A stretch of 64,000 nucleotides of DNA from Schizochytrium sp. TIO01 (GCA_004764695.1 SMSO01000006.1:15859-79858); one strand, 5' to 3'; shown: positions 23,553 to 43,438, numbered from the stretch's first letter. The notes: generated by a model not told the origin, from the sequence alone. Translations and numbers: made by a program.

Positions 23553-26500
23553 ATGACTACGGCAAGCAAAATTGAGGACATCAGAGAAGATACGACGGAG
23601 ATTCGGTAGGTGCACGATGCAGAAGGGAGGAGACAGAAGAAGGAGGCATCGCGTCGTCGATGTGTTGTAGTAGTCAGCTTTGTAGAAGAAGAATAGTTTT
23701 GTACTAGTAGTGGCACTCATGAAGAAGTTGGAAATGGCATATACTTACTCTCACTTGTTCACAAACAAACAAACAAACACAGTCTTGGTGGGCACGACAT
23801 TGGCTGGGAGGGCGCAAAGGCCGTCGCAAAGGCACTCGAGGGATGCAAGAACCTTCAACAATTGGAGTACGTTTGTGGAATCATCCACGAGGGAAAGCTA
23901 TCGTAATAGTCAGGACCAAGCTTTTTCTTTCTTTCTTTTTAGTGCTTGGTGTTTGTAGACTGCTGGTACACTACCTAAGTAGTTTACGTAGTTGGGTACG
24001 CAAAGAAAGGCAAAGAAGTCTTTTCTATTTTACAAAGAGAAGAAGGAAATCTATATAATTTGATAGGCAGCAGCAGCAGAAGAAGAAGAGATGATTGCTA
24101 TTTCTTGTGAGGAAAAACAAAACAAAACAGGATCAACTGACTGGACCTGTCTTTCCTGACAACGAATGAACAAAACAAACTTATTCATTTATACTCACAG
24201 TCTTGACAACAACAACATTGACGATGAGGGCGCAAAGGCCGTCGCAAAGGCACTCGAGGGATGCAAGAACCTGACTTATCTGAAGTACGTTTGTGGAATC
24301 ATCCACGAGGGAAAGCTATCGTAATAGGCAAGACCAAGCTTTTTCTTTCTTTCTTTTTAGTACTTGGTGTTTGTAGTACTGCTGGTACACTACCTAAGTA
24401 GTTTACGTAGTTGGGTAGGCAAAGAAAGGCAAAAAAGTCTTTTCTTTTTTACAAAGAGAAGAAGGAAATCTATATAATTTGATAGGCAGCAGCAGCAGCA
24501 AAAGAAGAGATGATTGCTTTTTATTGTGAGGAAAAACAAAACAAAACAAAACAGGATCAACTGACTGGACCTGTCTTTCCTGACAACGAATGAACAAAAC
24601 AAACTTATTCATTTATACTCACAGTCTTGACAACAACAACATTGGCTCGGAGGGCGCAAAGGCCGTCGCAAAGGCACTCGAGGGATGCAAGAACCTTCAA
24701 ACTTTAGAGTACGTTTGTGGAATCATCCACGAGGGAAAGCTATCGTAATAGTCAGGACCAAGCTTTTTCTTTCTTTCTTTTCAGTGCTTGGTGTTTGTAG
24801 TACTGCTGGTACACTACCTAAGTAGTTTACGTAGTTGGGTACGCAAAGAAAGGCAATGAAGTCTTTTCTTTTTTACAAAGAGAAGAAGGAAATCTATATA
24901 ATTTGATAGGCAGCAGCAGCAGCAGAAGAAGAAGAGCTGATTGCTTTTTATTGTGAGGTAAAACAAAACAAAACAGGATCAACTGACTGGGACCTGTCTT
25001 TCCTGACAACGAATGAACAAAACAAACTTATTCATTTATACTCACAGTCTTTTTGGGAACAACATTGGCTCGGAGGGCGCAAAGGCCGTCGCAAAGGCAC
25101 TCGAGGGATGCAAGAACCTTCAAACTTTAAAGTACGTTTGTGGAATCATCCACGAGGGAAAGCTATCGTAATAGTCAGGACCAAGCTTTTTCTTTCTTTC
25201 TTTTTAGTGCTTGGTGTTTGTAGTACTGCTGGTACACTACCTAAGTAGTTTACGTAGTTGGGTACGCAAAGAAAGGCAAAGAAGTCTTTTCTTTTTTACA
25301 AAAAGAAGAAGGAAATCTATAGAATTTGATAGGCAGCAGCAGCAGCAGCAGAAGAAGAAGAGCTGATTGCTTTTTATTGTGAGGAAAAACAAAACAAAAC
25401 AAAACAGGATCAACTGACTGGACCTGTCTATCCTGACAACGAATGAACAAAACAAACTTATTCATTTATACTCACAGTCTTCGTAGCAAGAACATTGGCG
25501 ATGAGGGCGCAAAGGCCGTCGCAAAGGCACTCGAGGGATGCAAGAACCTTCAAACTTTAGAGTACGTTTGTGGAATCATCCACGAGGGAAAGCTATCGTA
25601 ATAGTCAGGACCAAGCTTTTTCTTTCTTTCTTTTTAGTGCTTGGTGTTTGTAGTACTGCTGGTACACTACCTAAGTAGTTTACGTAGTTGGGTACGCAAA
25701 GAAAGGCAAAGAAGTCTTTTCTTTTTTACAAAGAGAAGAAGGAAATCTATAGAATTTGATAGGCAGCAGCAGCAGCAGAAGAAGAAGAAGAGCTGATTGC
25801 TTTTTATTGTGAGGAAAAACAAAACAAAACAAAACAGGATCAACTGACTGGACCTGTCTTGCCTGACAACGAATCAACAAAACAAACTTATTCATTTATA
25901 CTCACAGTCTTGACAAGAACAACATTGGCGATGAGGGCGCAAAGGCCGTCGCAAAGGCACTCGAGGGATGCAAGAACCTTCAAACTTTAGAGTACGTTTG
26001 TGGAATCATCCACGAGGGAAAGCTATCGTAATAGTCAGGACCAAGCTTTTTCTTTCTTTCTTTTTAGTGCTTGGTGTTTGTAGTACTGCTGGTACACTAC
26101 CTAAGTAGTTTACGTAGTTGGGTACGCAAAGAAAGGCAAAGAAGTCTTTTCTTTTTTACAAAGAGAAGGAAATCTATATAATTTGATAGGCAGCAGCAGC
26201 AGCAGAAGAAGAAGAGCTGATTGCTTTTTATTGTGAGGAAAAACAAAACAAAACAGGATCAACTGACTGGACCTGTCTTTCCTGACAACGAATGAACAAA
26301 ACAAACTTATTCATTTATACTCACAGTCTTTCTGGGAATAACATTGGCTCGGAGGGCGCAAAGGCCGTCGCAAAGGCACTCGAGGGATGCAAGAACCTTC
26401 AAACTTTAGAGTACGTTTGTGGAATCATCCACGAGGGGAAGCTATCGTAATAGTCAGGACCAAGCTTTTTCTTTCTTTCTTTTGAGTGGTTGGTGTTTGT

Positions 26501-29500
26501 AGTACTGCTGGTACACTACCTAAGTAGTTTACGTAGTTGGGTACGCAAAGAAAGGCAAAGAAGTCTTTTCTTTTTTACAAAGAGAAGAAGGAAATCTATA
26601 GAATTTGATAGGCAGCAGCAGCAGCAGCAGAAGAAGAAGAGCTGATTGCTTTTTATTGTGAGGAAAAACAAAACAAAACAAAACAGGATCAACTGACTGG
26701 ACCTGTCTTTCCTGACAACGAATCAACAAAACAAACTTATTCATTTATACTCACAGTCTTGGTGGGAACAACATTGGCGATGAGGGCGCAAAGGCCGTCG
26801 CAAAGGCACTCGAGGGATGCAAGAACCTTCAAACTTTAGAGTACGTTTGTGGAATCATCCACGAGGGAAAGCTATCGTAATAGTCAGGACCAAGCTTTTT
26901 CTTTCTTTCTTTTTAGTGCTTGGTGTTTGTAGTACTGCTGGTACACTACCTAAGTAGTTTACGTAGTTGGGTACGCAAAGAAAGGCAAAGAAGTCTTTTC
27001 TTTTTTACAAAGAGAAGGAAATCTATATAATTTGATAGGCAGCAGCAGCAGCAGAAGAAGAAGAGGTGATTGCTTTTTATTGTGAGGAAAAACAAAACAA
27101 AACAGGATCAACTGACTGGACCTGTCTTTCCTGACAACGAATGAACAAAACAAACTTATTCATTTATACTCACAGTCTTTCTGGGAATAACATTGGCGAT
27201 GAGGGCGCAAAGGCCGTCGCAAAGGCACTCGAGGGATGCAAGAACCTTCAAACTTTAGAGTACGTTTGTGGAATCATCCACGAGGGAAAGCTATCGTAAT
27301 AGTCAGGACCAAGCTTTTTCTTTCTTTCTTTTTAGTGCTTGGTGTTTGTAGTACTGCTGGTACACTACCTAAGTAGTTTACGTAGTTGGGTACGCAAAGA
27401 AAGGCAAAGAACTCTTTTCTTTTTTACAAAGAGAAGAAGGAAATCTATAGAATTTGATAGGCAGCAGCAGCAGCAGCAGAAGAAGAAGAGCTGATTGCTT
27501 TTTATTGTGAGGAAAAACAAAACAAAACAAAACAGGATCAACTGACTGGACCTGTCTTTCCTGACAACGAATCAACAAAACAAACTTATTCATTTATACT
27601 CACAGTCTTGGTGGGAACAACATTGGCGATGAGGGCGCAAAGGCCGTCGCAAAGGCACTCGAGGGATGCAAGAACCTTCAAACTTTACAGTACGTTTGTG
27701 GAATCATCCACGAGGGAAAGCTATCGTAATAGTCAGGACCAAGCTTTTTCTTTCTTTCTTTTTAGTGCTTGGTGTTTGTAGTACTGCTGGTACACTACCT
27801 AAGTAGTTTACGTAGTTGGGTACGCAAAGAAAGGCAAAGAAGTCTTTTCTTTTTTACAAAGAGAAGGAAATCTATATAATTTGATAGGCAGCAGCAGCAG
27901 CAGAAGAAGAAGAGGTGATTGCTTTTTATTGTGAGGAAAAACAAAACAAAACAAAACAGGATCAACTGACTGGACCTGTCTTTCCTGACAACGAATGAAC
28001 AAAACAAACTTATTCATTTATACTCACAGTCTTTGTAGCAACAACATTGGCGATGAGGGCGCAAAGGCCGTCGCAAAGGCACTGCATAAAGCATGTCCTT
28101 CTGTTAGAATCTAGTAAGTTCCGTCCCCTCTGCTGCTGTTCCCAGCTTGCGCAGAGCATTGCCTTCGCTGGTTATGTCTCCATATGGACTTGTGAGAAGG
28201 CCGTCTTTAGATGCGTTCATCGTTTTTCTAACAAGCGCTCTTATTCTCTTTCATTCGTGTATTCACATTCGTTACAAAACGCAGCTGTGACTTTTTGTCT
28301 GGAACCCCTAAAGAATTGTTCGAAAGGGTGTGTTCTCCTGGAGAGGACATTGCAGATTTCTCGTCAGAGCTCGAATCCTATGCTTCCATAGAGGCTGCAG
28401 AAAGCGAGCCTTCTGCAGAGCCCAAGAACGAGCAAGACGGCATTGATGGCGCCGGGCTTGCTACTTTGGATGGATCTGGGTAAGTTCATGCGGTCAGTCT
28501 TTGTTTGGGATCGTGTAATCATTCATTCCACGAATTGTGTTATTGAGATATAGGGGATCCTAACTTTTGCTTCTGCCTTTATTACTGCTTCAACATCATT
28601 TTGCTCGTTTGCTTACGTCTTCTTGTTCGTCTCAGAGAACGGGCGGATGGAGCGAGCGTGAGTTTCGCTGATGTGGTGCAGCTTGCCAAGAAAGTCTCGG
28701 ACTTGCGCGTTGACCGAGGTGGGGTCAGAGGAAACTCCCTGCAAACTGGGATTGCCTTGCTTGAGGAGTTCGTAGGATCGGCGATCCAGGGCTACTTCGG
28801 CCAAGTGAAGTTGCGACAGGTTTTCGCTGACATCAAGAACTCCAAAGAGAGTCTTGACGTGCTACAAGGCCAGATTCGTGCAAGCTCTGCTGATGGCTTT
28901 GCCAGCCTCATCGAAAAGCGGAACACCGAACGGAGGCACCTGTATTCACTTTTGCAGGTTGTGTACCCATGGGTTCGCGCCAACCTTTGTGAAAGTGATG
29001 AGAGTGCAGTGCGAGAATTCAAAGAGAGAGTTGAAAGTTTGGTAAACGATCTAAAGATCAACCTTGCTCCAGTCGATGAAGAGACCATCACAGATGACTT
29101 CAAACACTGCCAGGAACTCGTAGCTCAGGCTGTCAAATGCGTGGAAGGGTACAAGAGGAGTGGAGAAGGCCAACACAACAAAATTGGTGAACGAAGCCAA
29201 AAAGCTGTAAAGCGCGTCATCTCTCGATTGTCTGAGCTAGAACTTGGTGATGGATTATCGGTTGCCCTGAGGACACCTGAGCAGGCCACGGAGCTAGAAC
29301 CAGAATTATCTGAACTGGAGAGTGCTCTCAAGGAAGAGATCAAAGTTCTACAAGGAGATACACTTCGTGCCCAATTGTCCGAAATACTTTGCGCAATAAG
29401 TGCAACATTTGCTCGATTTGAAGGATACTCTGAAAGTGCTGCGTTGAATGACGCGAGAAAGTGCACACCAACAGAGCTCTCTAATATGTATGACTATGCA

Positions 29501-31324
29501 GTACTGGGTTTGAAACAACCAAATATTATAGATGTCGAGGCATTATACCAGCAACTTGACAACTCGAGGAAAGCGACAGAGAGATTAAAAACTGCCGAAG
29601 CAGAACTCGAAGCTGATGACTTGGATGAGGAAGAACGAGAGCACTATAGAAATCGTATCAAGAAACAAGAGCTCATTCTCTCTCAAGGCAACCCTATCGA
29701 CCTTAGCAAAGCTTTTCGTCATAAGCTTGCTGAGACTCTGCAACATGCGCAGGAACATTATCCAGAGTTGCTGCAAGATAGAGCCTGGCTGGAAAGGCTT
29801 CACGTAAGTGCAGAGGGTGTTTTTGAAGTAGCATGTTCTGACCTTTGGTTGACGAATGTCACAGTCGCGGACTTCAAGCCTGTCGGCGAACCCCTTGCTT
29901 CCAGAGGTGGCAAGAGAGTACAAAAGGTTCTTGACAACGTTGGTAAAACTATGGTTTTGAAACAATTTCAACTCGGCCATTCGAGCCAACACAAAATATT
30001 TTACAGGCAAGCTGCAAATATGGGAAACGTGGCGTCTCAGCACGTGATACGTATCACTGGCGCTTTTGTGGATACCTCTAATGGAGAACCGCGTGGCTGT
30101 ATCGTCATGCCTTTCTACGAGCAAGGTGACCTTGCCAAGTGGATTGAGAGTCATCCTAACGAAGGCAAAGCAGCGCGCGACCGACTTGCTATGGGCCTGC
30201 TTATCGGTGTGGCGGATTTGCATACCTATGGCATTGTGCATTGTGACATCAAACCAGAAAACATTTTCCTCACAAGTAACGGGACACCATTGATCGGCGA
30301 CTTTGACGGCATCAAGGTTGCAGACTACACTGCAACTTACACATCACTTCAGGCAACGCCACGGTATGTTTGCCCCGAGTTGCAGAATGGGCCTGTAGAT
30401 AGGTTTGAAACAGCGATGGACATGTACTCTGTGGGCATAAGCTTAAAGGAGCTGTATCCTACTGAGCGAACCGCTGCAATGCAGACACTTATCGATGCTC
30501 TTACAGCAACAGACCCTGGTCAGCGTCCAACCGCTCGCCAAGCACTCCAACATGAAGCTTTTGGAGCTCCTAAGATCCCTGTCAAGATGTGCCTAGTATG
30601 CATGGAGGAGCATCTGCTTTCCGAGGGCACGAGCTGCGAGGAGGGAGACTTTCTTTGCAGAGACTGTATCGAATCTTCTGTAGAAGCGGCGGCACGGCCA
30701 CTTGCTAACGTAAGAGTGGATGCTGATGGAACAATGGCATGCATGAAACCTGAATGTAGTGGAAGGATATCAGGTCAAGAAATCACCCGTCTTGCACCAA
30801 CTGCTTTGAATCACCTATTGTTGATTGCGAAGATGAAGGCAGAAAATGAAGCAGCAGTTTGGGCGGAGAAGGAGATCCAAAGGCGTATAGCACAAGTTTT
30901 ACGTGCTGATGAACAGAATCGCGACGCACGGATTCATTTACTTCATATTCAAGAGAAGATCTTGAGCACATGTTGTCCGAACTGTAAGGCATATGTACAC
31001 GATTTTGACGGTTGCTGTGCTGTAGAGTGTGGTAATGAGACTTGTGGTCATCACTTCTGCGCTTGGTGTCTTGAGTATAGTTCTCAGGATGCAGATGTTT
31101 GCCATGGTCATGTGAGAACCTGCTTGAAAAAGCTTGGACAAGATCCATTTTTTGCTGATTCATTTGAGCAGGTTCGTGAGGCGTGGCAGTTGCTCCGCGC
31201 AGCACGTCTGCGTGAGTACTGGGATGCAAAAATTCAGGATAGAAATCTTCGACTCGTTCTGAAAGAGTTATTGTCACCTTTGCTAACACCAGATATTGTT
31301 GGCGCAAACTTTAGATTGGAATAA
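23553..31324 (+). CDS. LRR(11)-helical-non-RD Ser/Thr kinase-RING1/RING2(Rcat) protein, 14 exons, predicted 1286 aa (paralog 2, intact)
   Basis: Exons 23553-23605; 84-nt LRR exons starting at 23783, 24201, 24625, 25048, 25478, 25908, 26327, 26757, 27176, 27606, 28030; then 28285-28479 and 28636-31324. All introns are GT..AG and phase 2, and the total is 3861 nt with no internal stop. Kinase motifs VLKQF, HCDIKPEN, GDFDG, YVCPE. Zn fingers CLVC-x11-CEEGDFLCRDC-x24-CMKPEC and CPNC-x9-GCCAVEC-x4-CGHHFCAWC-x11-CHGHVRTC. Confidence 0.9.
23783..28113 (+). repeat. Tandem exon+intron array, 10 periods of 418-430 bp (11 exons)
   Basis: Exon-start spacings 418, 424, 423, 430, 430, 419, 430, 419, 430, 424. 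Introns are near-identical apart from (cag)n/(aag)n/(aaaac)n copy number and a few SNPs. Confidence 0.97.
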
Positions 31325-33432
31325 ACTAATCGAATTTTCAATGATTATCTTTTGCTTAAGCGCCGTTGACTAGAACGCAAAAAAGCAACTGCTCTCCTCC
31401 AGACAGTATCGACGTCTGCCAACAGGATCAAAATTTATAATGTTTTTTTTTTGGCAAGGTACTTGGTGAGGGAACGTACTAAAATTTAACATAAATTAAA
31501 CATAAATTAGAACAAATAATAACTCGTGAAGTTTCACTGATGATATATATGCTTTCTTAACTTTATTTTTCCAGTTTGAGGAGCATATTTACTTTATTAT
31601 TAGATACGAATTCTTTCTTAGTTTTACTCTCTCCGTTCCTTCGATAGTTCATTCAGCAACACCGCAAGGTATCAGAAACTATGTGTTTAAGCCAAATCGT
31701 CGCAAAATAAACTCAAAAGTACTTTTTTTATTCAACTCTCTTTGGCAAATCTCAATAGCTTTCATTTCGGAAAGAAACTTTTTATTTATTTTTTCATCAA
31801 AGCCAAAATGCAGTTCTTCTAACGCCACTGAAACCCTTAATGTAACGATTTCCTCTCGGTTTTCCAATTTAAATTCTTCACACCAATCGCTACTCCACCC
31901 TAGCATCAGAGGGCCTGTAATACGCAACTTTTTATTGCACGGTCCTATCAAACGTAGAATACCATGATATTACGGTTGCGAAGTATTGGGCGTTTCCAAT
32001 TTGCATAAGAACTCCATCAAAGGCAGGAGCAAAAGTAGTATTACAGACACAACCCTTTCTCCGAACCTATGACGACCTGAGTAATAGGGAGATTGGTTCT
32101 TTCCTGGTCACTATTTACTATAACATAATAAGTCAATCGTAAAGATCAGACTCTGAACACAAGCCTTTGCACTTCAGACAACTTTTGAAAGCTAGAAGGA
32201 AACCATCAGTTATTTAATCCTCAAAACTCTTTGATCTTGTTATGCCATGTATCCAGATTTACTATTCGAAGCATGAACTCTTCTCAAGAAAACCATTTAA
32301 TTTCCACATCTTAAACTCTCAGAACAAAGTTGACTCAACGAACCTCCAAAGGCAAAACATTGCCTTCTTGATCACCTCTTTAAGTTGTTCTTCAAAGATT
32401 TTATAGAAGAGAGCATTGCAAGAACACACAGAGTGATAAGGGAATTAGTTTACTCCATCAATCTGAGATTGCAAGACAATGACAGAATTGTGGATACCAC
32501 AGAAGCTACAAAGTAAATGCACAATCGCTATAGGAGGAGGCTATTAAAAGATGATCTCTAAGCAGCCAGAGGTTGTATGGGAAGATGGAGGCATTTTTCA
32601 ATGCTTCGGCGTACGCAGTTAGCGATTGCAAACCTTGGAGATGAACATTCAGCACCAAAACTTTAAGAGTTTTGTGCATTCAAGGATTTACTGTCCTAGT
32701 AAATGATTAGTTGCTGCTGCGTAAAGATATTTAATAGGTGGAACAGTTCATACCCTGAGTAGGAGACTAAGACTGTTAAAACTCAGAGTTCAAGGGGTGA
32801 GGCTAGCTCGTTTGTTCAACACAATTCTTCGGTTGTGTATTTCACATTCACTTATGAGTTTCCATGGTCTTACTCCTTCGTATTTGATAGTCATATTCTT
32901 ACAAGTCCTCGTAGTCTAGGACTTATAAAAGTGTGACAATGACTCTTCTCCACAAAACTCTTTGCTTGGTAATCTCAGCACAGATTTTTTAAATTTTGCT
33001 GTGCCCCATGAACTGCATATTTTAATCTGGCTACTTGACTTAATAGAATCCCACATGATAAGCTTTATCAGTGTTCCAAGACATATTCTACAATGATGAA
33101 TTTGAAAATTACTCCTCTACATTATGATTTATCTGCTGAAAGAAACTATTGACTCTACATACTTATGCCTTCTCGAAGTTTTACAGCTATGCATCGGACG
33201 GATCATCACAATGTGCCGATCACAGGACCAAAGCTTATAGACTTTGACAATGGGCCTTGTCAACAGTTCCTGAATGTTAATTCTAGCCTTTCTTTTCCTT
33301 CATTTCTCTACCTACACTATCTCTTGATGATCGCCTCACGCTAACTTGCAATATACCTCCAAAAGGGGAACACACATATTTAAGCAACATGTGCTGAGAG
33401 TTTCAACAAAAGTGTTAAGTGGTTTGCTTCCC

Positions 33433-35116: not shown

Positions 35117-35234
35117 ACATTCGATCATACCACGCGGGTAACACCTCAACTCATTCTCACTGAGAGGTAAACTCGCGTAGGGTCAGGTCAGTAGTATTAT
35201 AGGGGACTGCATACAAAGCCCCGGTGTTGAATAT
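35117..35234 (+). rRNA. 5S rRNA copy 3, diverged (probable pseudogene)
   Basis: About 10 substitutions versus copies 1 and 2, several in helices; TATA and T-run retained. Confidence 0.85.
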
Positions 35235-38060
35235 TTTTTGTCATTTCTATTTAAACTTAGCATGAATAGAAAGCAACTCTAAAGTGTTACAATATTTCTT
35301 TTGCAGAGGTGAGTATTATAATCGCCTTAGCGCATAATGTCAGCAAGACATCTAGTACTCATGGAAGGCGCTACCCTTCAATTCATCGACTATATCGTTT
35401 GTATGCAGGACAATGGTTAGATTCCAACCTTCATTCGTATGAGTCTAGAAAGCAGAATCGACAAGAGTGATAGCATTTTGAAAGAGGTTGTCACCATAGG
35501 ATCAGCATCCTTCGAAGGTTTTACACTCCAGGCGAACAACTCGTGCTGTACACATCTTCCATCCAATATTCAATTCACATTTATCTCCTTCTACAAGTTG
35601 TTTGCCTCTTCAGCAGTGTAAATAGAGAATTAAAAAAAGGATTGGCTTGGCTATAAAAGAATAGTCTTCCGAATAGGTGAGGTGGCCTTCTAGATGCAAA
35701 AACTATAATTGAATTCTGAATGTTTCAATGCAACGGAGCACTCGCATTGCTGCTTCTGAAACCTTCGAAAATTGGCAACTCATTCAACTTTCACTAAGCA
35801 CACATGTATTTCTGCTCTGTTCCTATCGTACTTCGCCTGGCTCAGGCTGACGTGGGCGAGAGTGAAGAGAATTTCGATGTGAATAGCTGGGCGTACGTGT
35901 TCACCTTACCACGTTTGTTTCCAGAAATGTCTAGTCTGCCTGGATCCAATATCGTATTCCTCAGAAATGACGACATTGGTCTTATGAAAGTGTTGATGTA
36001 AGTATGAATATTCATTTATTATTAGGAGTCCAGGTATCATAAAGTCTTGGCATGTTTGAAAGTATTTGGTACTGGTATCTAACCCCGTAGCCTAGCATGT
36101 TCTGGGTGAAGATACCAAGGTGCTTCCACAGCCACAAGCTGATGCATTCTTCCTGTAGCTAGAGGCAGGTTCAAGAAAAGTTTATCGAGTTGAAAGAGAA
36201 CTTGCAAGTAACGAATTGTCTGCACTCAAGAATGTATCACAGAACCGTAATGTACAAATGTTTTATAAGCCAGATAACCCAAGGGATGAAGTATCTGAAG
36301 TACGTGGAATACCATACGCTGCTGCTAATTCAAAGAGTTTCGTACACAGCATGCCGTGAAACAGCTTTATATGTCACATTTAACACGGAGTGAACTAGTT
36401 ACGCTGGGATTTAATTTACAAGTACTCTCAGGGAGAAGAATGTCGACGCAAAGAACACATTGAACCTTTTTTTCGAACGATACTCCAGCCTGATGATTAT
36501 TTTGTATTGACATTATTAAATCACAACCAGCTATAAATCGGACGACTAAGGCTGTTGTCGAAGATTCTTTTGAACAGAATACAATTTGAAATCTATGACC
36601 CAGAGAAATGTTTGGTACATTGGATCAGCGCTTTATACACGTCAAGAGAATTCCTCGCAGAAGCTTTCACGATCAGCTGATGCAAGTCTTGTGCATACAC
36701 TTAGAAGCAACTAAAAGGAGTTTAGCGTCAAAGAACTAAGGGAGATGTTTCAAAGGGCTACGATAGGTATCTTTGAATTGCTGAGGACTCCAAAGGTTCT
36801 TGAGGCCCCTAATGAGGCAGTACCTTCTTTCGAATGAAGGCTTAAAGTGAACATGGACGCCAAGCCGTACAAAGCATCAAAACTCTGAGGCACAAACTCG
36901 ACGTGGTCGGATCGCATTCCGTACCTCTGACGGAGAGGTTTACATTTCTGATCTGGTACTTGAGAGTATGGAAGGAGATTATCTCTCATCTCTACGTGCT
37001 TGAAGAGGTCTTCATTCCTTTTGCTGACATTCTCTGAGTACGGAAGGACGGGTGGGCTGGGGGACCAGATCCAATTGTTTGCACAGTGCACGTTATTTAA
37101 TGTGTTAAAGCAGAATTGTACAGGTAAAGTCGAACCTCGGGTTTGTCATTTCGCGAGAATCTTCGACCTACTGCACATCATCATGAGGTTATATACTATG
37201 CTACGTTAGCTTGAAATGTATTGGATAATATCGAAGGACAGACATTGAGATTTAAAGGGGGGAGGAGGGGGGCACTCCAGACGCCCATCCTCTCCCTGTA
37301 ATCATTGTTTTGACCCCTGGGTCCAAGCTCGAACATAAGACTCTGGATCTCTGATATAGGTATTAAAATGTAATTTCTGACAGACTGAATGAACCTTGAC
37401 AGTGTTGTAGCAGGTCGTTCCCTCGTTGACTATACACTTATTGTTCATTTGTGTGCAAAAAATTGGACCAAGCTGTAAACACTAATGTGATAGCAATCAA
37501 AAACGACTTCAAGTTGTTGTCCCTTTTTGGAAACAGTTTTTTGTTTTTAATTTTTTTTTAAAATATTAAATTTTATTACAATTATTTTTATTAATTAATA
37601 TCATTAATTAAAAAGATACTGGAAACTAATGAAAGCACCTTAAGCGGAAAGGGGCGAAGCACCTTAAAACAAGAAAGGAATGAAAGGTAATACGTAGTAG
37701 TAGTAGGCCCTAACCACTACTCAATCTAAAATAAAATAGGCAATCCTTCTCAAACTCGAAACACGAGGCAGCGTGAGCTCACAGTTTTTTCGCCCCCGCA
37801 ACCTCCCACACCCCTCCACGGGTTGGTTGCTCGTGGGCGTGGCTTGCTCTGCTGACGCAGTCACGAGGCGTCGCGCCGGGTCCGCTTCTCCTTCCTTACT
37901 GCTCAGAAGAAGAAGTCTTCGTTCCTGATCAGTAGTGCAATAAACAAGCTACTCTCTCCTTTGAGTGTCAAAACAAAGCAAAGACAAAGCAAAAAAGACA
38001 ATCAACGTGGTTGATCAATTCGTTTGCTCCATCCATCAAAGGTGACACTGCTCAAAGACG

Positions 38061-41000
38061 ATGACTGGCGCACGCAGAATTGAGGACATTAGAGAAGATA
38101 CGACGGAAATATAGTAAGTGCAGGAGGAGACAGAAGAAGAATGTACCGCGTGATCGGTGTAAAGAGCAAGTTAGTTCTGTAGAAGAATAGTTTTGTTTTG
38201 TAGTTGCACTATTGAAGTTGGAGATCGCACATACTAACTCTACCTTGCTCACCAACAAACACAGTATAAGTTGGAAAAGCATTGGCGATGAGGGCGCAAA
38301 AACCGTCGCAGTAAAAGCAAAGGGATGCAACAACCTTGAAGACTTGTAGTACGTTCATGGAATACAGAGAAAAGTGGAGAAACGAGCAGAACGGAAGAAG
38401 ACTTCTCCTGTGATTATCCTTTTTCAAAATGAAAAAGAGGAGGATCAATCGAACCACTGACTGTGCTGGGTGGTGCTGTTCCGAATGAACTTGTTCATAT
38501 GTAATTACAGTCTTAGAGATAACAACATCGGCGATGAGGGCGCAAAAGCCGTCGCACAGGCACTGGAGGGATGCAAGAACCTTCAACGGCTGGGGTACGT
38601 TTGTGTAATCTACGAAAGGCTAGGCTCGTACCCCATACGATTGCTCTCTTTCTTCTTTGGGGGGGTGTTTTGAAAAAGATAATCCAAACGAAACCACCTT
38701 ATGTAATCGAGTTGTATAAAAAGAAGGGAACGCTTTTATAAGAGAGAGAGGGGAAAAGTAAACCTACGTTTTCTTTAATTAAATGCGATAGAGAGAGCAG
38801 TTAAATTAGCAGAAGAGAGCAAAGGAAGAACAATGATTTTGTGATGATTTCATCAAACTTGAAAAGAAGAGGATCCATCGAATCACTGACTGTCTTAAAC
38901 TGTTTCCTCCCTGCCAACGAATGAACTTATTCACATACACTCACAGTCTTAACGGAAACAACATTGGGGATGAGGGTGCAAAGGTTGTTGCAAAGGCGCT
39001 GAAGGGATGCAAGAACCTCAAAGACCTGTAGTACGTTTGTGGAATCCTCGGAAAGCTAAGGCGTAGTTAGGCCTCATTTTTTTTTCCGTGGTGTTCTGAG
39101 AAAAGGGACCAAAACGAAATTCTTCTAGTAGTCCCAGTAGTTGAGTATTGTAGAAAGGAAAGAACTTGTTTTTAATTTAAGAGAAGAAAGGAAGAAAGAA
39201 AGGAAAAAGGAAAAAGGAATGTTAGTGTTCTATTCACGAAATTGTGATGGAGAGACGTGCACAACGGAAGAAGACTTCTCCTGTGATTTTTAAAATTGTG
39301 AAAATTAAGAGGATCAATCTAATCACTGACTGTCTTGAAATTTGCCTTTGCTGACAACGAATGAACTTATTAATATATACTCACAGCCTTTCTGACAACA
39401 ACATTAGCGATGAGGGCGCAAAAGCCGTCGCAAAGTCTCTGCACAAATCGTGTCCTTCTGTTCAAATTTTGTAAGTTCAATCTCCTCCGCTGTTGTTCCC
39501 AGCTTGCACAATGCCTTGCGCAGAACCTTGCCTTAGTTGGTTCTCTCACTCTCCGCGAACTTTCGAGGCCCTCTTTGAATGCTGCGTTCACCGTATTCTA
39601 ACAAGCGTTTTTATTCTTTCATTCTTTCACAACGCAGTTTCTACAATCATTATTCGCCTTTAACCCCAAAAGAATTGTTCGTGGATGTGTGTTCTCCTGG
39701 AGAGGACATTAATTCCTCTTCAGACACCGATTCCTGTGCCCCCACAGAGGCGGCAGAACGTGAGCCTTCTGTAGGGTCCAAGGTCAAGAAAGATGGCGCA
39801 GGGCTTGCTACGGAACCTTGTGGTCCAGATAGATGTGGGTAAGTTCATGCGGTTTCTGTGTTTGGAATTGTGATCATTCATTCTACGAATTGTGTTGTTG
39901 AGATATAGGGGATCCTAACTTTTGCCTCTGCCTCTCTTATTGCTTCTGCTATCTTCTCTTTGCTTGTTGTTTTACATCTTCTTGCTCGGCTCAGAGAACG
40001 GCTGGATGGCACGAGCGTGAGTTTCGCTGATGTTGTAAACCTTGCCAAGAAAGTCTCGGACTTGCGCGCCGGCCGAGGCGGGGTCAGAGGAAACTCTTTG
40101 CAGACTGGGATTGCCTTGCTTGAGGAATTCGTAGGACCAGCGATACAGGGCTACTTTGGCCAAGTGAAGTTGCGACAGGTTTCCGCTGAGATCAAGAACT
40201 CCAAAGAGAGTCTTGACGCACTACAAGGCCATATTCGCGCATGCTCTGCTGATGGCTTGCCCAATCTCACCGAAAAGCGGAATGCTGAGCGAGATCGCCT
40301 TCATTCGCTTTTGGAGGTTGTATACCCATGGGTTCGCGCAAAGCTTTGCAAAAGTGATGAGGATGCAGTGCGTGAATTCAAAGTGAGGACCGAAAGTTTG
40401 GTACAGGATCTAAATATCAACATTGCACCAGTCACTGAAGAGACATGTACAGCTGACTTTAAATACTGCCAAGAGCTCGTGGGCCAGGCCACCAAGTGCA
40501 TCGAAGAGTACAAAAAATATGGAGAAGGTCGACCAAGAAACATTGGCGATCGAAGCCAACAAGCTGTAAAAAGCGTCATCTCTCGACTGACTGAGCTAGA
40601 ACTTGGTGATGGATTATGGGTTGCTCTGAGCACACCTGAGCGGGCCATAGAGCTCGAGACCGAATTAAGTGAACTTGAGTATGCTCTACAGGAAGAGCTC
40701 GAAGTTTTACGAAGCGACACACTTAGTGCCCACTTGTCCGAAATACTTTGCGCAATAAGTTCAACATTTGCTCGTTTTGAAGTATACTCAGAAAGCACTG
40801 TGCTGAATGAAGCGAGCAAGTACTCCACAGAGGAGGTCTCTGAACTATATGACTATGTAGTGCTGGGTTTGAAAGAACCAAATGCCTTAGACGTTGAGGC
40901 ATTATACCAGAAACTTGACAAATCGAGGAAAGCGACGGAAAGTTTGAAGAGAGTTAAAGAAGAACTCAAAGCAGAAGACCTGAATGAGGAAGAACTAGAG

Positions 41001-41969
41001 CACCATAGGAGTCATATCAAGAAATATGAGCTCATGCTCTCTCAAGGAAATCCTATCATGCTTAGCAAACGTTTTCGCCATAAGCTTGCTGAAACCCTAA
41101 AACACGCACAGGAACATTATCCTGAGCTATTGCAGGACAGAGCATGGCTAGAAAGGTTTCATGTAAGTGCAGAGGGTGTTTTGGAAGTAGCTTGTTCTGA
41201 TCTTTGGTTGACGAATGTAACAGTTTCGGACTTCCAGCCTGTTGGCGACCCCTTTGCTTCCAAAGGTAACAAGAGAGTTCAGAAAGTACTTGATGGAGAT
41301 GGTGAAGTTCTAGTCCTCAAACAGTTTCAACTTGGAGATCCAGGTCAATCCAAAACCTTCTACAAACAAGCTGCAAATATGAGGAAAGTGATGTCTCAGC
41401 ATTTGGTACATATTACTGGCGTTTTTATGGATTCTTCTAATGGAGAGGAATGTGGCTGTATCATTATGCCTTACTACGAGCAAGGTGACCTTGCCAAGTG
41501 GATTGAGAGTCATCCTAACGAAGGTAAAGCAGCACGCGACCGACTTGCTGTAGGCCTGCTTATCGGTGTGGCAGATTTACATACCCACGGCATTGTGCAT
41601 TGTGACATCAAACCAGAAAACATTTTCCTCACAAGCAACGGGACGCCATTGATCGGCGACTTTGACGGAATCAAGATCGCAGATTACACTGCAACTTACG
41701 TATCACTCCAAGCACCGTCACGGTACAGTGCCCCTGAGTTGCTGAATGAGCCCGTAGATAAGTTTGAAACAGCGATGGACATGTACTCTGTGGGCATATG
41801 CTTAAAGGATCTGTATCCTACTGAGCGGACCGCTGAAATGCAGACACTTATCGATGCTCTTACAGCAACAGACCCTTGTCAGCGTCCAAGTGCTCTTGAA
41901 GCACTCCAACATGAAGCTTTTGGAGCTCCCAAGATCCCTGGCAAGATATGTCTTGATTTTACGAAGTAA
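38061..41969 (+). CDS. LRR(4)-helical-non-RD kinase paralog 3, predicted 854 aa, stops at the start of the RING
   Basis: Phase-2 exons 38061-38113 (MTGARRIEDIREDTTEI), 38265-38348, 38511-38594, 38947-39030, 39387-39470, 39638-39838, 39995-41969. HCDIKPEN/GDFDG/YSAPE intact; ends KICLDFTK*; decayed RING-homologous DNA continues to ~42310. Confidence 0.85.
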
Positions 41970-43438
41970 GGTCTGCTTTCTGAGAGCATGAGCTGCGAGG
42001 AGGGAGGGAGACTTTGCAAAAACTGTATCGAAACTGCAGTAAAAGCGGCGGCATAGCCACCAGCTACTGCTAGGGTGGGCATCGATGGAAGGACAGCACG
42101 CATAAAACCTAAACCTAGTCGAAGGATGTTATGTTAAAAAACTACCTGTCTTGTACCAACCGCTTTGAATCATTTTTTGTTTATTGCGATGATGTAGGCA
42201 ACAACCCAAGCAGCAGCCTGGGCTTGGAAAGAAATCCAAAGGCGCACAGAAGTTCTACGTGCAGGTGAACAAAACAATGAGCATTTACTGGATTTTCAAG
42301 AGAAGGTCTTCAGAGCTGTCGGCCTGCGTAGTGCTTAGCACAAGCCGCAGAATTGTAAATATCTATTTGGTTTCGCGTAATGCTAATAAAGAAATAGCAT
42401 TTCTAAGCAAGCCAATAATTGATAACGTCAACTATGCATGCTTATTAAATAGTAGCAATTTTCTAAGGCTCTTTGCTGCTGTTTCTGGTGTTGAATCATA
42501 TCTATCAGTGCAAGTTTCTCACCAAGCTACGGCCGTTCTCTGCAATGGACGTTGTGTGCATCTGTCATAACGAAATGCAGCTCCACTGTAGGGTTGCGCT
42601 TTCTTCATCATTGAGGATGTTCAGCGCTTTCAAGCAACATAGATCACCTATCCGCTCTATAATTACGATAACCCTTCATTCTTTGGTACAATCTTCTAAA
42701 ATTCGAAAAACGCATCTTAACCTTACACTTTGGGTACTGGGAACAAATGAAAGAGAATTCTTGAAGTCACTTTGATTCAAACATGAAAGGACAACGTATT
42801 CTTTAGAATGGTTTAATTAAATCAACGTTTACAGCTTCCAGTTTATCAAAATTTTAATTCTGCTCATCAAGCTCTTACTGCTCATACCTGTTGCTAGCTT
42901 TACTCAAAAATTTCTTCTGGCCTTGTCAAAGCCGATGCGAACAAAGACGTAATTGATCTAGTACGTGGAAACTTATTCCAGATGAGACCCGTTACGTACT
43001 CACCAGCCTCAGCTCCCTCGGATAACTTATTCTTGCTTTTACCCACAGTCTCTTCTTCGTTAGCTAAGAAACGGCATCTAAGTTGCCTACGCATGTTCTA
43101 GGTCAAAACCAAGATTAAAATATTGTTGTGTTACCGAGGGGAAACACCACGAACAAGATCAAGTGCAACTTTTATAAATATAGCAATGCTGGGTCATAAT
43201 AAATAATGTATTCCTTTATACGGTAATAAAGAATTGAATGCCTTACTAAAAAGAAAACTAGTCGATCAACAGTCAATTTCGCTTATTTGGTATCGACACA
43301 CTTGAAGCAACGCACAACCCATCCTGTTACTGGAGTATAGGGTTCTCTTTAGCTTTTAAGTCCCGTTTCCATCTGACTGGTTAGTATGGAAAGAATGGTC
43401 ATGCTACATAACAAGAAAAGACCACAAAATTTAATATA

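Follow-up and report, generated by a model that had tools for sequence, protein, structure and literature searches.

Does the 907-aa open reading frame (ORF) for a kinase that lies among the rRNA genes of a Schizochytrium sp. TIO01 contig stand alone as a gene, or is it the end of a longer one that starts in the tandem repeat upstream, and what could the product do? We examined these questions in a window of 64,000 nt, by which we mean the whole stretch of DNA analysed (C5:15859-79858, with C5 being SMSO01000006.1 of the 64.07 Mb, 37-contig assembly GCA_004764695.1). The gene in question occupies positions 23553-31324 of the window, on the plus strand. We lean towards reading it as one intact gene out of a transcribed family of about 50 that encode cytosolic recognition proteins, which would be diversified in the germline and combine leucine-rich repeats (LRRs), a kinase and a RING-between-RING (RBR) ligase, plausibly against viruses or parasites. 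A preliminary description, made from the sequence alone, had assigned the DNA to a thraustochytrid-like host, which is supported.

The gene model, built by script, has 14 exons, with 11 LRR exons between a start exon and an exon for an acidic linker, which is followed by the last exon. Together they sum to 3861 nt, equal to 1286 codons and a TAA, with no internal stop, and all 13 introns are GT-AG and in phase 2. Downstream of an in-frame TGA at 23529, the first ATG is that at 23553. The predicted exon 1 (23553-23605) carries this start codon and runs for 17 codons plus 2 nt, up to a donor GT at 23606. The script found exactly 11 LRR exons, each of 84 nt and phase 2, preceded by cag and followed by gtacgt (gtaagt for the final one). 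They lie at 23783-23866, 24201-24284, 24625-24708, 25048-25131, 25478-25561, 25908-25991, 26327-26410, 26757-26840, 27176-27259, 27606-27689 and 28030-28113. Exon 13 (28285-28479) encodes the acidic linker, with 17 acidic and 3 basic among its 67 residues. The last exon (28636-31324, 2689 nt, TAA at 31322-31324) encodes a helical domain, the kinase and the RBR module. Domain searches were run exon by exon, and the exons were joined only for frame and hydropathy arithmetic. The highest 19-residue Kyte-Doolittle window of the 1286-aa product is 1.32 and the N-terminus is hydrophilic. Hydropathy and inspection of the N-terminus gave neither a membrane segment nor a signal peptide, and the product should therefore be cytosolic. 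The preliminary description had taken the 907-aa ORF for only the last of 14 exons; the open phase-2 model confirms this, together with the 11 LRRs, one per 84-nt exon, and the open 1286-aa product without a signal peptide.

Tandem Repeats Finder delimited the array at 23778-28083 (+), with a period of 430, 10.1 copies and 94% matches. Each LRR unit is 28 aa long (xLxxNNIGxEGAKAVAKALEGCKNLxxL), and the final one is a C-terminal cap variant (..ALHKACPSVRI), which closes the LRR series in every paralogue checked. When ten of the exons were scanned singly by Pfam, nine matched LRR_6 with E-values from 1.7e-4 (exon 8) to 0.025 (9e-4 for exon 2); exon 1 was the only one of the ten without a match, and exon 9, outside the ten, is placed by the exon model. 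The single-exon scores stayed under the gathering threshold because the 24-residue model straddles the exon borders. With 11 tandem units in a 28-aa register, the LRRs are of the ribonuclease inhibitor (RI) type.

Evidence for splicing came from contigs of four public runs aligned to 27690-31400, that is, downstream of most of the LRR array. Three runs (X1, X3 and X7) were labelled RNA only as a guess, and X19 is probably DNA. The preliminary description had named spliced reads joining the LRR exons to 28285 and 28636 as the test of its model, and such junctions are present in the probable RNA contigs, at the level of the family. In contigs of X1 and X3, exon end 28479 is joined to 28636, with 156 nt skipped between GT and AG. 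Contigs of X1, X3 and X7 leave the cap exon at 28113 and continue in the next exon, which begins at 28285, and in the same runs an LRR exon abuts the next LRR exon in an exact 84-nt register. The exon to intron depth was ~25:1 in X1 and ~1:1 in X19, whose contigs had none of the spliced junctions over 27690-31400 and an even depth over the introns. The spliced contigs carry paralogue-type mismatches to the window copy, and splicing thus holds for the family and for the homologous junctions, not uniquely for the window copy. In the probable RNA runs, some contigs agree with the last exon of the window copy over 155-174 nt without a single mismatch.

A transcript is also available for a sister gene on another contig (C13:1152392-1158118), which matches the complete transcript-derived ORF P0159 (MMETSP0960, 1243 aa) with 99-100% identity. 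Each 28-aa LRR of the sister gene has its own 84-nt exon, and P0159 residues 329-1237 are encoded on one large last exon. P0011, the near-identical cluster representative of P0159, had LRR_6 (1.4e-33) and Pkinase matches, and alignment showed the same tail. We take MMETSP0960 to be Aurantiochytrium limacinum; judged from this match and from the layout around the rRNA genes, the genome analysed is almost certainly of the same species. The sister gene probably represents the ancestral, single-copy state of the cassette family before its expansion.

Within the array of the window gene, the introns are 98.3% identical (nucleotide diversity, pi, 0.016), compared with 89.4% for the exons (pi 0.106). 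The exon variation is confined to nt 5-14, 23-25 and 73-83, and nt 28-72 are invariant. Across 75 LRR exons from 17 loci, entropy peaked with 2.3-3.4 bits at LRR positions 3, 4, 26 and 27, corresponding to the x residues of LxxLxLxxN that face the concave side; no variation was seen at L2, I7, G11, A16 and L19. Judged from these alignments, a diversity restricted to concave-face codons in otherwise homogenised units is hard to explain without either selection for difference or a targeted process.

The intron that accompanies each cassette (e.g., 24709-25047) is present in at least 331 copies genome-wide, with 94-100% identity and a size of 335-346 nt. The copies are spread over many chromosomes, at internal and subtelomeric positions. 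Array length varies, with 18 introns upstream of the copy on contig C7 among the matches listed, versus 10 in the window gene. The near-identity of the cassette introns contrasts with a synonymous divergence (dS) of ~0.15 in the last exons of the same genes. In the sister gene on C13 the LRRs are divergent and not homogenised, and its introns of ~85 nt are unrelated to the cassette intron. An intronic RNA was also considered; the cassette intron had no Rfam match and a fold z of -1.8, which makes no case for one.

How large is the family? The preliminary description had proposed a genome-wide search, and this recovered at least 51 paralogues: the gene is not a lone one. Scored from 322 candidates, these kinase-RBR last exons are nearly all open, with 58-92% identity, and many are near contig ends. 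All 17 loci inspected had upstream 84-nt LRR exons and the kinase motif HCD. The 291-nt 5' region including exon 1 is found in at least 40 copies with 80-100% identity, about one per family member. Among 12 paralogues, the ratio of nonsynonymous to synonymous divergence (dN/dS) was 0.29 overall, 0.41 in the helical domain, 0.19 in the kinase and 0.24 in the RBR module (dS ~0.15). The latter two values indicate that the enzymatic half is maintained by purifying selection.

The last exon begins with the all-helical domain of ~400 aa (28637-29833). Its AlphaFold2 model has 18 helices and a mean predicted local distance difference test (pLDDT) score of 79, and its PELL motif is conserved in the wider family. 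The domain gave no Pfam match, no usable Atlas match and no significant fold match. A pore-former reading was not adopted: the structures retrieved were long helical bundles, including alpha-pore-forming toxins, at Foldseek E of 0.15 or higher and a TM-score of ~0.15.

The atypical protein kinase domain (29918-30457) was the sole Pfam finding in the 907-aa ORF (Pkinase, 1e-27). We recognized HCDIKPEN (HCD at 30239-30247), DFD in place of DFG (30299-30307) and a beta3 Lys in VLK. A GxGxxG loop was not present in the kinase, the loop reading ..SRGGKRV.., and the alphaC Glu is replaced by Gln in the window kinase and 13 of 16 diverse relatives. Of the residues expected in an active kinase, 15-16 of the 16 diverse members keep the catalytic Asp, the Lys and Asn of HxDxKPxN, the Asp of DFD and the beta3 Lys. 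All 12 aligned family members have HCD, and the wider clade has H, then C, G or A, then D. No Arg stands before the catalytic Asp, so that the kinase is indeed of the non-RD kind, as first described. The kinship to IRAK and receptor-like kinases (RLK) that had been drawn from this did not hold, the closest solved relatives being 9gmp (MAPKK-like), StkP and PAK4. For the PDB entry 9gmp, no paper was found in the literature. Since the peculiarities are common to 13-16 of 16 diverse relatives, they are, from the alignments, traits of a clade and not of a decayed copy. Without GxGxxG and alphaC Glu, signalling by this predicted kinase is less secure than the preliminary description implied.

The 253-aa tail downstream of the kinase was modelled from nine family sequences, with a pLDDT of 65 overall and 75-91 over the first 80 residues. 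The top of the Foldseek list consisted nearly entirely of RBR ligases, led by RNF216 (E 1.9e-4) and followed by HOIL-1L, HHARI and parkin. The first zinc module, RING1 (30590-30757), has the spacing C-x2-C-x11-C-x3-D/H-x2-C-x2-C-x24-C-x4-C. Tail residues 5-100 superposed on RNF216 RING1 with a VIA-align Z of 10.0 (root-mean-square deviation 2.4 A, 89 residues), and on the RING1 of parkin, ARIH2, HOIL-1 and HOIP with Z of 5.5-7. A family profile of 30 tails matched parkin RING1 (E 4.9e-4), and both model and profile point to the RING1 cross-brace fold.

The second zinc module (30974-31123) resembles the Rcat, or RING2, of RBR ligases, with the spacing C-x2-C-x9-C-x4-C-x4-C-x4-C-x2-C. The 30-tail profile matched CUL9 Rcat (E 4.2e-4), a family Cys being aligned with the catalytic residue of its GCLHM motif, and more weakly ARIH1 RING2 and HOIP. 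This candidate catalytic Cys (codon 31013-31015) is nearly invariant in 30 diverse sequences; conservation is 90% or more for it and for the Cys that follows, and the His required by a classical RING is not conserved. The Rcat is thus recognizable at the sequence level, the structural model being weak there. We rejected a classical RING for this module: its His is not conserved, two extra Cys are, and the broad profile prefers CUL9 Rcat. The closest named Atlas clusters were IBR and Rcat_RNF216, and Pfam had no IBR or Rcat match at E<=1 in the last exon. We found no IBR in the tail, where ~70 helical residues without a Cys/His cluster separate C65 from C138. As only helix lies between the two zinc modules, the tail is predicted to be an RBR-type E3 ubiquitin ligase module without IBR, made of RING1, a helical linker and Rcat. 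The RING/Rcat ligase of the preliminary description is supported for both zinc modules, with the correction that no IBR lies between them.

These parts have counterparts in several known systems. The tail is like the RBR ligases RNF216/TRIAD3, parkin, HHARI/ARIH1, CUL9 and HOIP in its RING1 fold and Rcat-type Cys spacing, and like RNF216 in the long helical linker before the Rcat. It differs from them in the missing IBR, in the fusion to a kinase and an LRR array, and in the Asp at the RING1 His position. The kinase PINK1 switches on parkin, and phosphorylation activates RNF216. PINK1 and parkin therefore exemplify a kinase able to switch on an autoinhibited RBR; here both would be on one polypeptide and the kinase is unrelated to PINK1, so that the comparison is an analogy only. 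LRSAM1 and the bacterial IpaH/SspH also place an LRR recognition domain and a ubiquitin ligase on one chain, but they have a RING or NEL ligase instead of an RBR, no kinase, and single genes instead of a cassette-diversified family. XA21, FLS2 and IRAK1 share the pairing of LRRs with a kinase that lacks the Arg of HRD; in contrast to them, the window protein is predicted to be cytosolic, its LRRs are RI-type and its kinase falls outside the IRAK/Pelle/RLK group by its solved relatives. With these relatives, and neither a transmembrane segment nor a signal peptide, it does not belong to the RLK/Pelle/IRAK proteins.

The exon organization has parallels of its own. In Ectocarpus LRR-ROCO genes and vertebrate NLR/ribonuclease-inhibitor genes, each phase-matched exon encodes one or two LRRs of the RI type. 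The window gene is like them in that the LRR unit equals the exon, the phase is symmetric, shuffling would be in frame and the repeat is RI-type and 28 aa long; it differs in its kinase and RBR effector and in introns that are near-identical genome-wide. The last exon had no Pfam match to Roc/COR at E<=1, which sets it apart from ROCO/LRRK proteins. It also had no Pfam match to NACHT or NB-ARC, and the other exons are LRRs and linker, so that it is not an NLR/STAND protein. Fungal HNWD/HET-E proteins have near-identical internal WD40, ankyrin (ANK) or tetratricopeptide repeats with few hypervariable positions. They resemble the window gene in homogenised tandem repeats, variation at ligand-facing positions and a large family, and also in that WD40 and ANK replace the LRRs in the wider kinase-RBR family. 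The window gene differs from them by having no NACHT/NB-ARC, repeats on separate exons and other effector domains.

From these features we infer an immune function of the family and a mechanism in which one protein senses, signals and ubiquitinates. The LRR horseshoe would bind a protein ligand in the cytosol, and ligand binding or clustering would relieve autoinhibition. The fused kinase could then phosphorylate in cis or trans and so switch on the RBR, comparable to PINK1-parkin and phosphorylated RNF216. The RBR would ubiquitinate the bound ligand or a downstream target via a Cys thioester. Because the cassettes are in tandem and all in phase 2, unequal crossover and conversion could add, drop or swap LRRs in frame. 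The resulting germline-diversified repertoire would most plausibly act against viruses or other intracellular parasites.

Several points weigh against this reading. Expression of the window copy itself is unproven, given the paralogue mismatches of the spliced contigs, and the RNA labels of X1, X3 and X7 are a guess. Positive selection at the variable LRR codons was not shown, with a ratio of nonsynonymous to synonymous polymorphism (pN/pS) of ~1.0 and not above 1; the value of 0.08 at conserved codons is biased by the exon filter used. Lacking the glycine loop and the alphaC Glu, the kinase might be a pseudokinase, or serve as a nucleotide-binding switch and no more, and its activation of the RBR is proposed by analogy only. 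The Rcat part of the model is of low confidence (pLDDT 49-77), a narrow tail profile also matched the RNF4 RING (3.8e-5), and RING1 of the window copy has an Asp where the wider family has a zinc-binding His. A published mirusvirus study on this host does not mention the family, and we found no infection-linked experiment or expression contrast for it.

Could the array be something other than coding? LORE-TEARS of A. limacinum MYA-1381 have units of 366-529 bp in 1.8-22.6 repeats without similarity to GenBank, and were published as spacers between subtelomeric rRNA and 5S genes with a proposed role in chromosome-end maintenance (bioRxiv 10.1101/2023.06.15.545109). The window array, with ten 430-bp units between subtelomeric rRNA and 5S genes, matches this definition and has the position of a Group 5 element (bioRxiv 10.1101/2023.06.15.545109). 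The difference lies in the reading, as we take the repeat for a coding exon plus intron and not for a spacer with a chromosome-end role. It is extremely improbable that the array is a non-coding subtelomeric spacer as published, with the 907-aa ORF as the only gene and the 84-nt frames due to chance. The description of LORE-TEARS as spacers without GenBank similarity speaks for it (bioRxiv 10.1101/2023.06.15.545109), but all 11 units keep an open 84-nt frame, GT-AG borders and the same phase, in addition to LRR_6 similarity, the RNA-type contigs abut LRR exons in register, and a transcript confirms the sister gene. The window copy could also be a silent archival donor of cassettes in rDNA-flanked subtelomeric chromatin, comparable to var or VSG copies, which we consider unlikely. 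Such a role would fit its place between 5S genes and ~7 kb from the 18S-28S unit, the broken copy 8 kb downstream and the paralogue mismatches of the spliced contigs at its junctions. Its frame, however, is fully open and its splice sites are perfect, and the zero-mismatch last-exon contigs (155-174 nt) come from probable RNA, with DNA carry-over or identical paralogue stretches as other possible sources.

Two further alternatives accept a coding family and concern its job. The family might serve allorecognition, in the sense of mating or fusion control as for fungal HET/HNWD, or endogenous regulated proteolysis, the LRR variability reflecting relaxed constraint and subtelomeric recombination. 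This is a serious possibility, which we nevertheless hold to be rather improbable. A pN/pS of ~1 at the variable codons is also expected under relaxed constraint, duplication is frequent in subtelomeric regions, which hold many of the copies, LRRs of the RI type serve as protein-binding modules of a general kind, and the lack of infection-linked data is consistent with it as well. Neutral drift, on the other hand, fails to explain a 20-fold higher diversity at concave-face codons inside cassettes homogenised to 98%, and ~50 intact genes with an effector half under purifying selection are what one typically finds in recognition families. A family for allorecognition would also be a recognition repertoire, differing from the defence reading we prefer in the ligand only. 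It is slightly less probable still that the kinase is a pseudokinase or allosteric scaffold and that the LRRs gate the RBR directly, without phosphorylation, as in IpaH LRR-NEL. The missing GxGxxG, the replacement of the alphaC Glu by Gln (13 of 16 family kinases) and the change from DFG to DFD all suggest this. Against it, 15-16 of 16 diverse members still have the catalytic Asp, the HxDxKPxN Lys and Asn, the Asp of DFD and the beta3 Lys, and the kinase has the lowest dN/dS of the three domains (0.19), a pattern more typical of an active atypical kinase.

The module is not restricted to this genome. The tail profile matched 2230 representative proteins at E<=1e-3, and 835 of these still at the stricter E<=1e-10. 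Among 36 long matches, Pfam detected a kinase in 20, ankyrin in 4, LRR_6 in 3 and WD40 in 1, as well as SF1 helicases (AAA_11/AAA_12) in 5, DEAD helicases in 3 and ubiquitin domains in 2. One Atlas neighbour cluster of the tail is from Nucleocytoviricota. In Hondaea fermentalgiana, GBG34335.1 ("Protein kinase, putative") combines LRR, ankyrin, kinase and tail; other named members are GBG34857.1 from the same species and CAK8998897.1 from Durusdinium trenchii. In environmental protists as well as in Hondaea and Durusdinium, the helical-kinase-RBR cassette follows LRR, ankyrin, WD40 or propeller domains. Homologue searches returned only three close relatives with 50-59% identity and missed a 36%-identical sister family, kinase words filling the candidate list, so that their blanks carry little weight. 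Taken together, the profile matches indicate that the IBR-less RBR tail is a widespread module without a Pfam model.

We found no description of the helical-kinase-RBR architecture in the literature. The preliminary description knew of no described family, and none was found; the same architecture does sit unannotated in public data, as P0159 and GBG34335.1. It had also expected gene callers to miss the LRR half, and the public ORF-style calls of relatives, 841-914 aa long, indeed carry a kinase annotation only. This uncharacterised architecture, in which a repeat sensor is combined with a helical domain, an atypical kinase of the non-RD kind and an RBR lacking the IBR, recurs across several lineages of protists. 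Its sensors are interchangeable, and gene calling based on ORFs largely overlooks it. For a model marine protist, our reading turns a published class of repeats at the chromosome ends, supposed to be non-coding, into the coding cassettes of a large gene family. More speculatively, and as a possibility that we regard as tentative, thraustochytrids and other protists may have an NTPase-free class of innate immune receptors. In these, a sensor of LRR, ankyrin or WD40 repeats, encoded in cassettes and diversified by recombination, would gate a built-in kinase-to-RBR switch of the PINK1/parkin kind that ubiquitinates intruders. In A. limacinum, the rDNA-flanked LORE-TEARS subtelomeres would generate the diversity and the near-identical introns would be the substrate of recombination. 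If the defence reading is true, unicellular eukaryotes would possess receptors in the cytosol that are diversified in the germline and coupled directly to ubiquitination. This idea is directly testable in A. limacinum, since it has persistent mirusviruses, is culturable and can be genetically modified. The predicted fusion of a kinase to an RBR would also offer a natural single-chain system for the phospho-control of RBR enzymes.

The window gene lies between the 5S genes at 22177-22295 and 35117-35235, ~7 kb from an 18S-5.8S-28S unit. This unit is on the minus strand, with 28S at 10813-14158, 5.8S at 14309-14459 and 18S at 14545-16329, and a further rDNA unit is at C5:318-5831. Another 5S gene starts at 3313; all three 5S genes are on the plus strand, the one at 35117 with a lower score (65 bits). 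Two tRNA genes start at 8751 (+) and 9603 (-). No telomere repeat was found at the start of contig C5.

A broken family member follows 8 kb downstream of the window gene (38511-42317, plus strand), with LRR exons at 38511-38594, 38947-39030 and 39387-39470. Its kinase/RBR remnant (~39996-42317) is 74% identical to query residues 1-778, contains two TAG and two TAA stops and is without the Rcat end. On the minus strand there are three divergent 84-nt RI-type LRR exons (19424-19507, 19639-19722 and 20125-20208), whose repeats are not homogenised. They form a head-to-head neighbour of the window gene across the 5S gene at 22177-22295.

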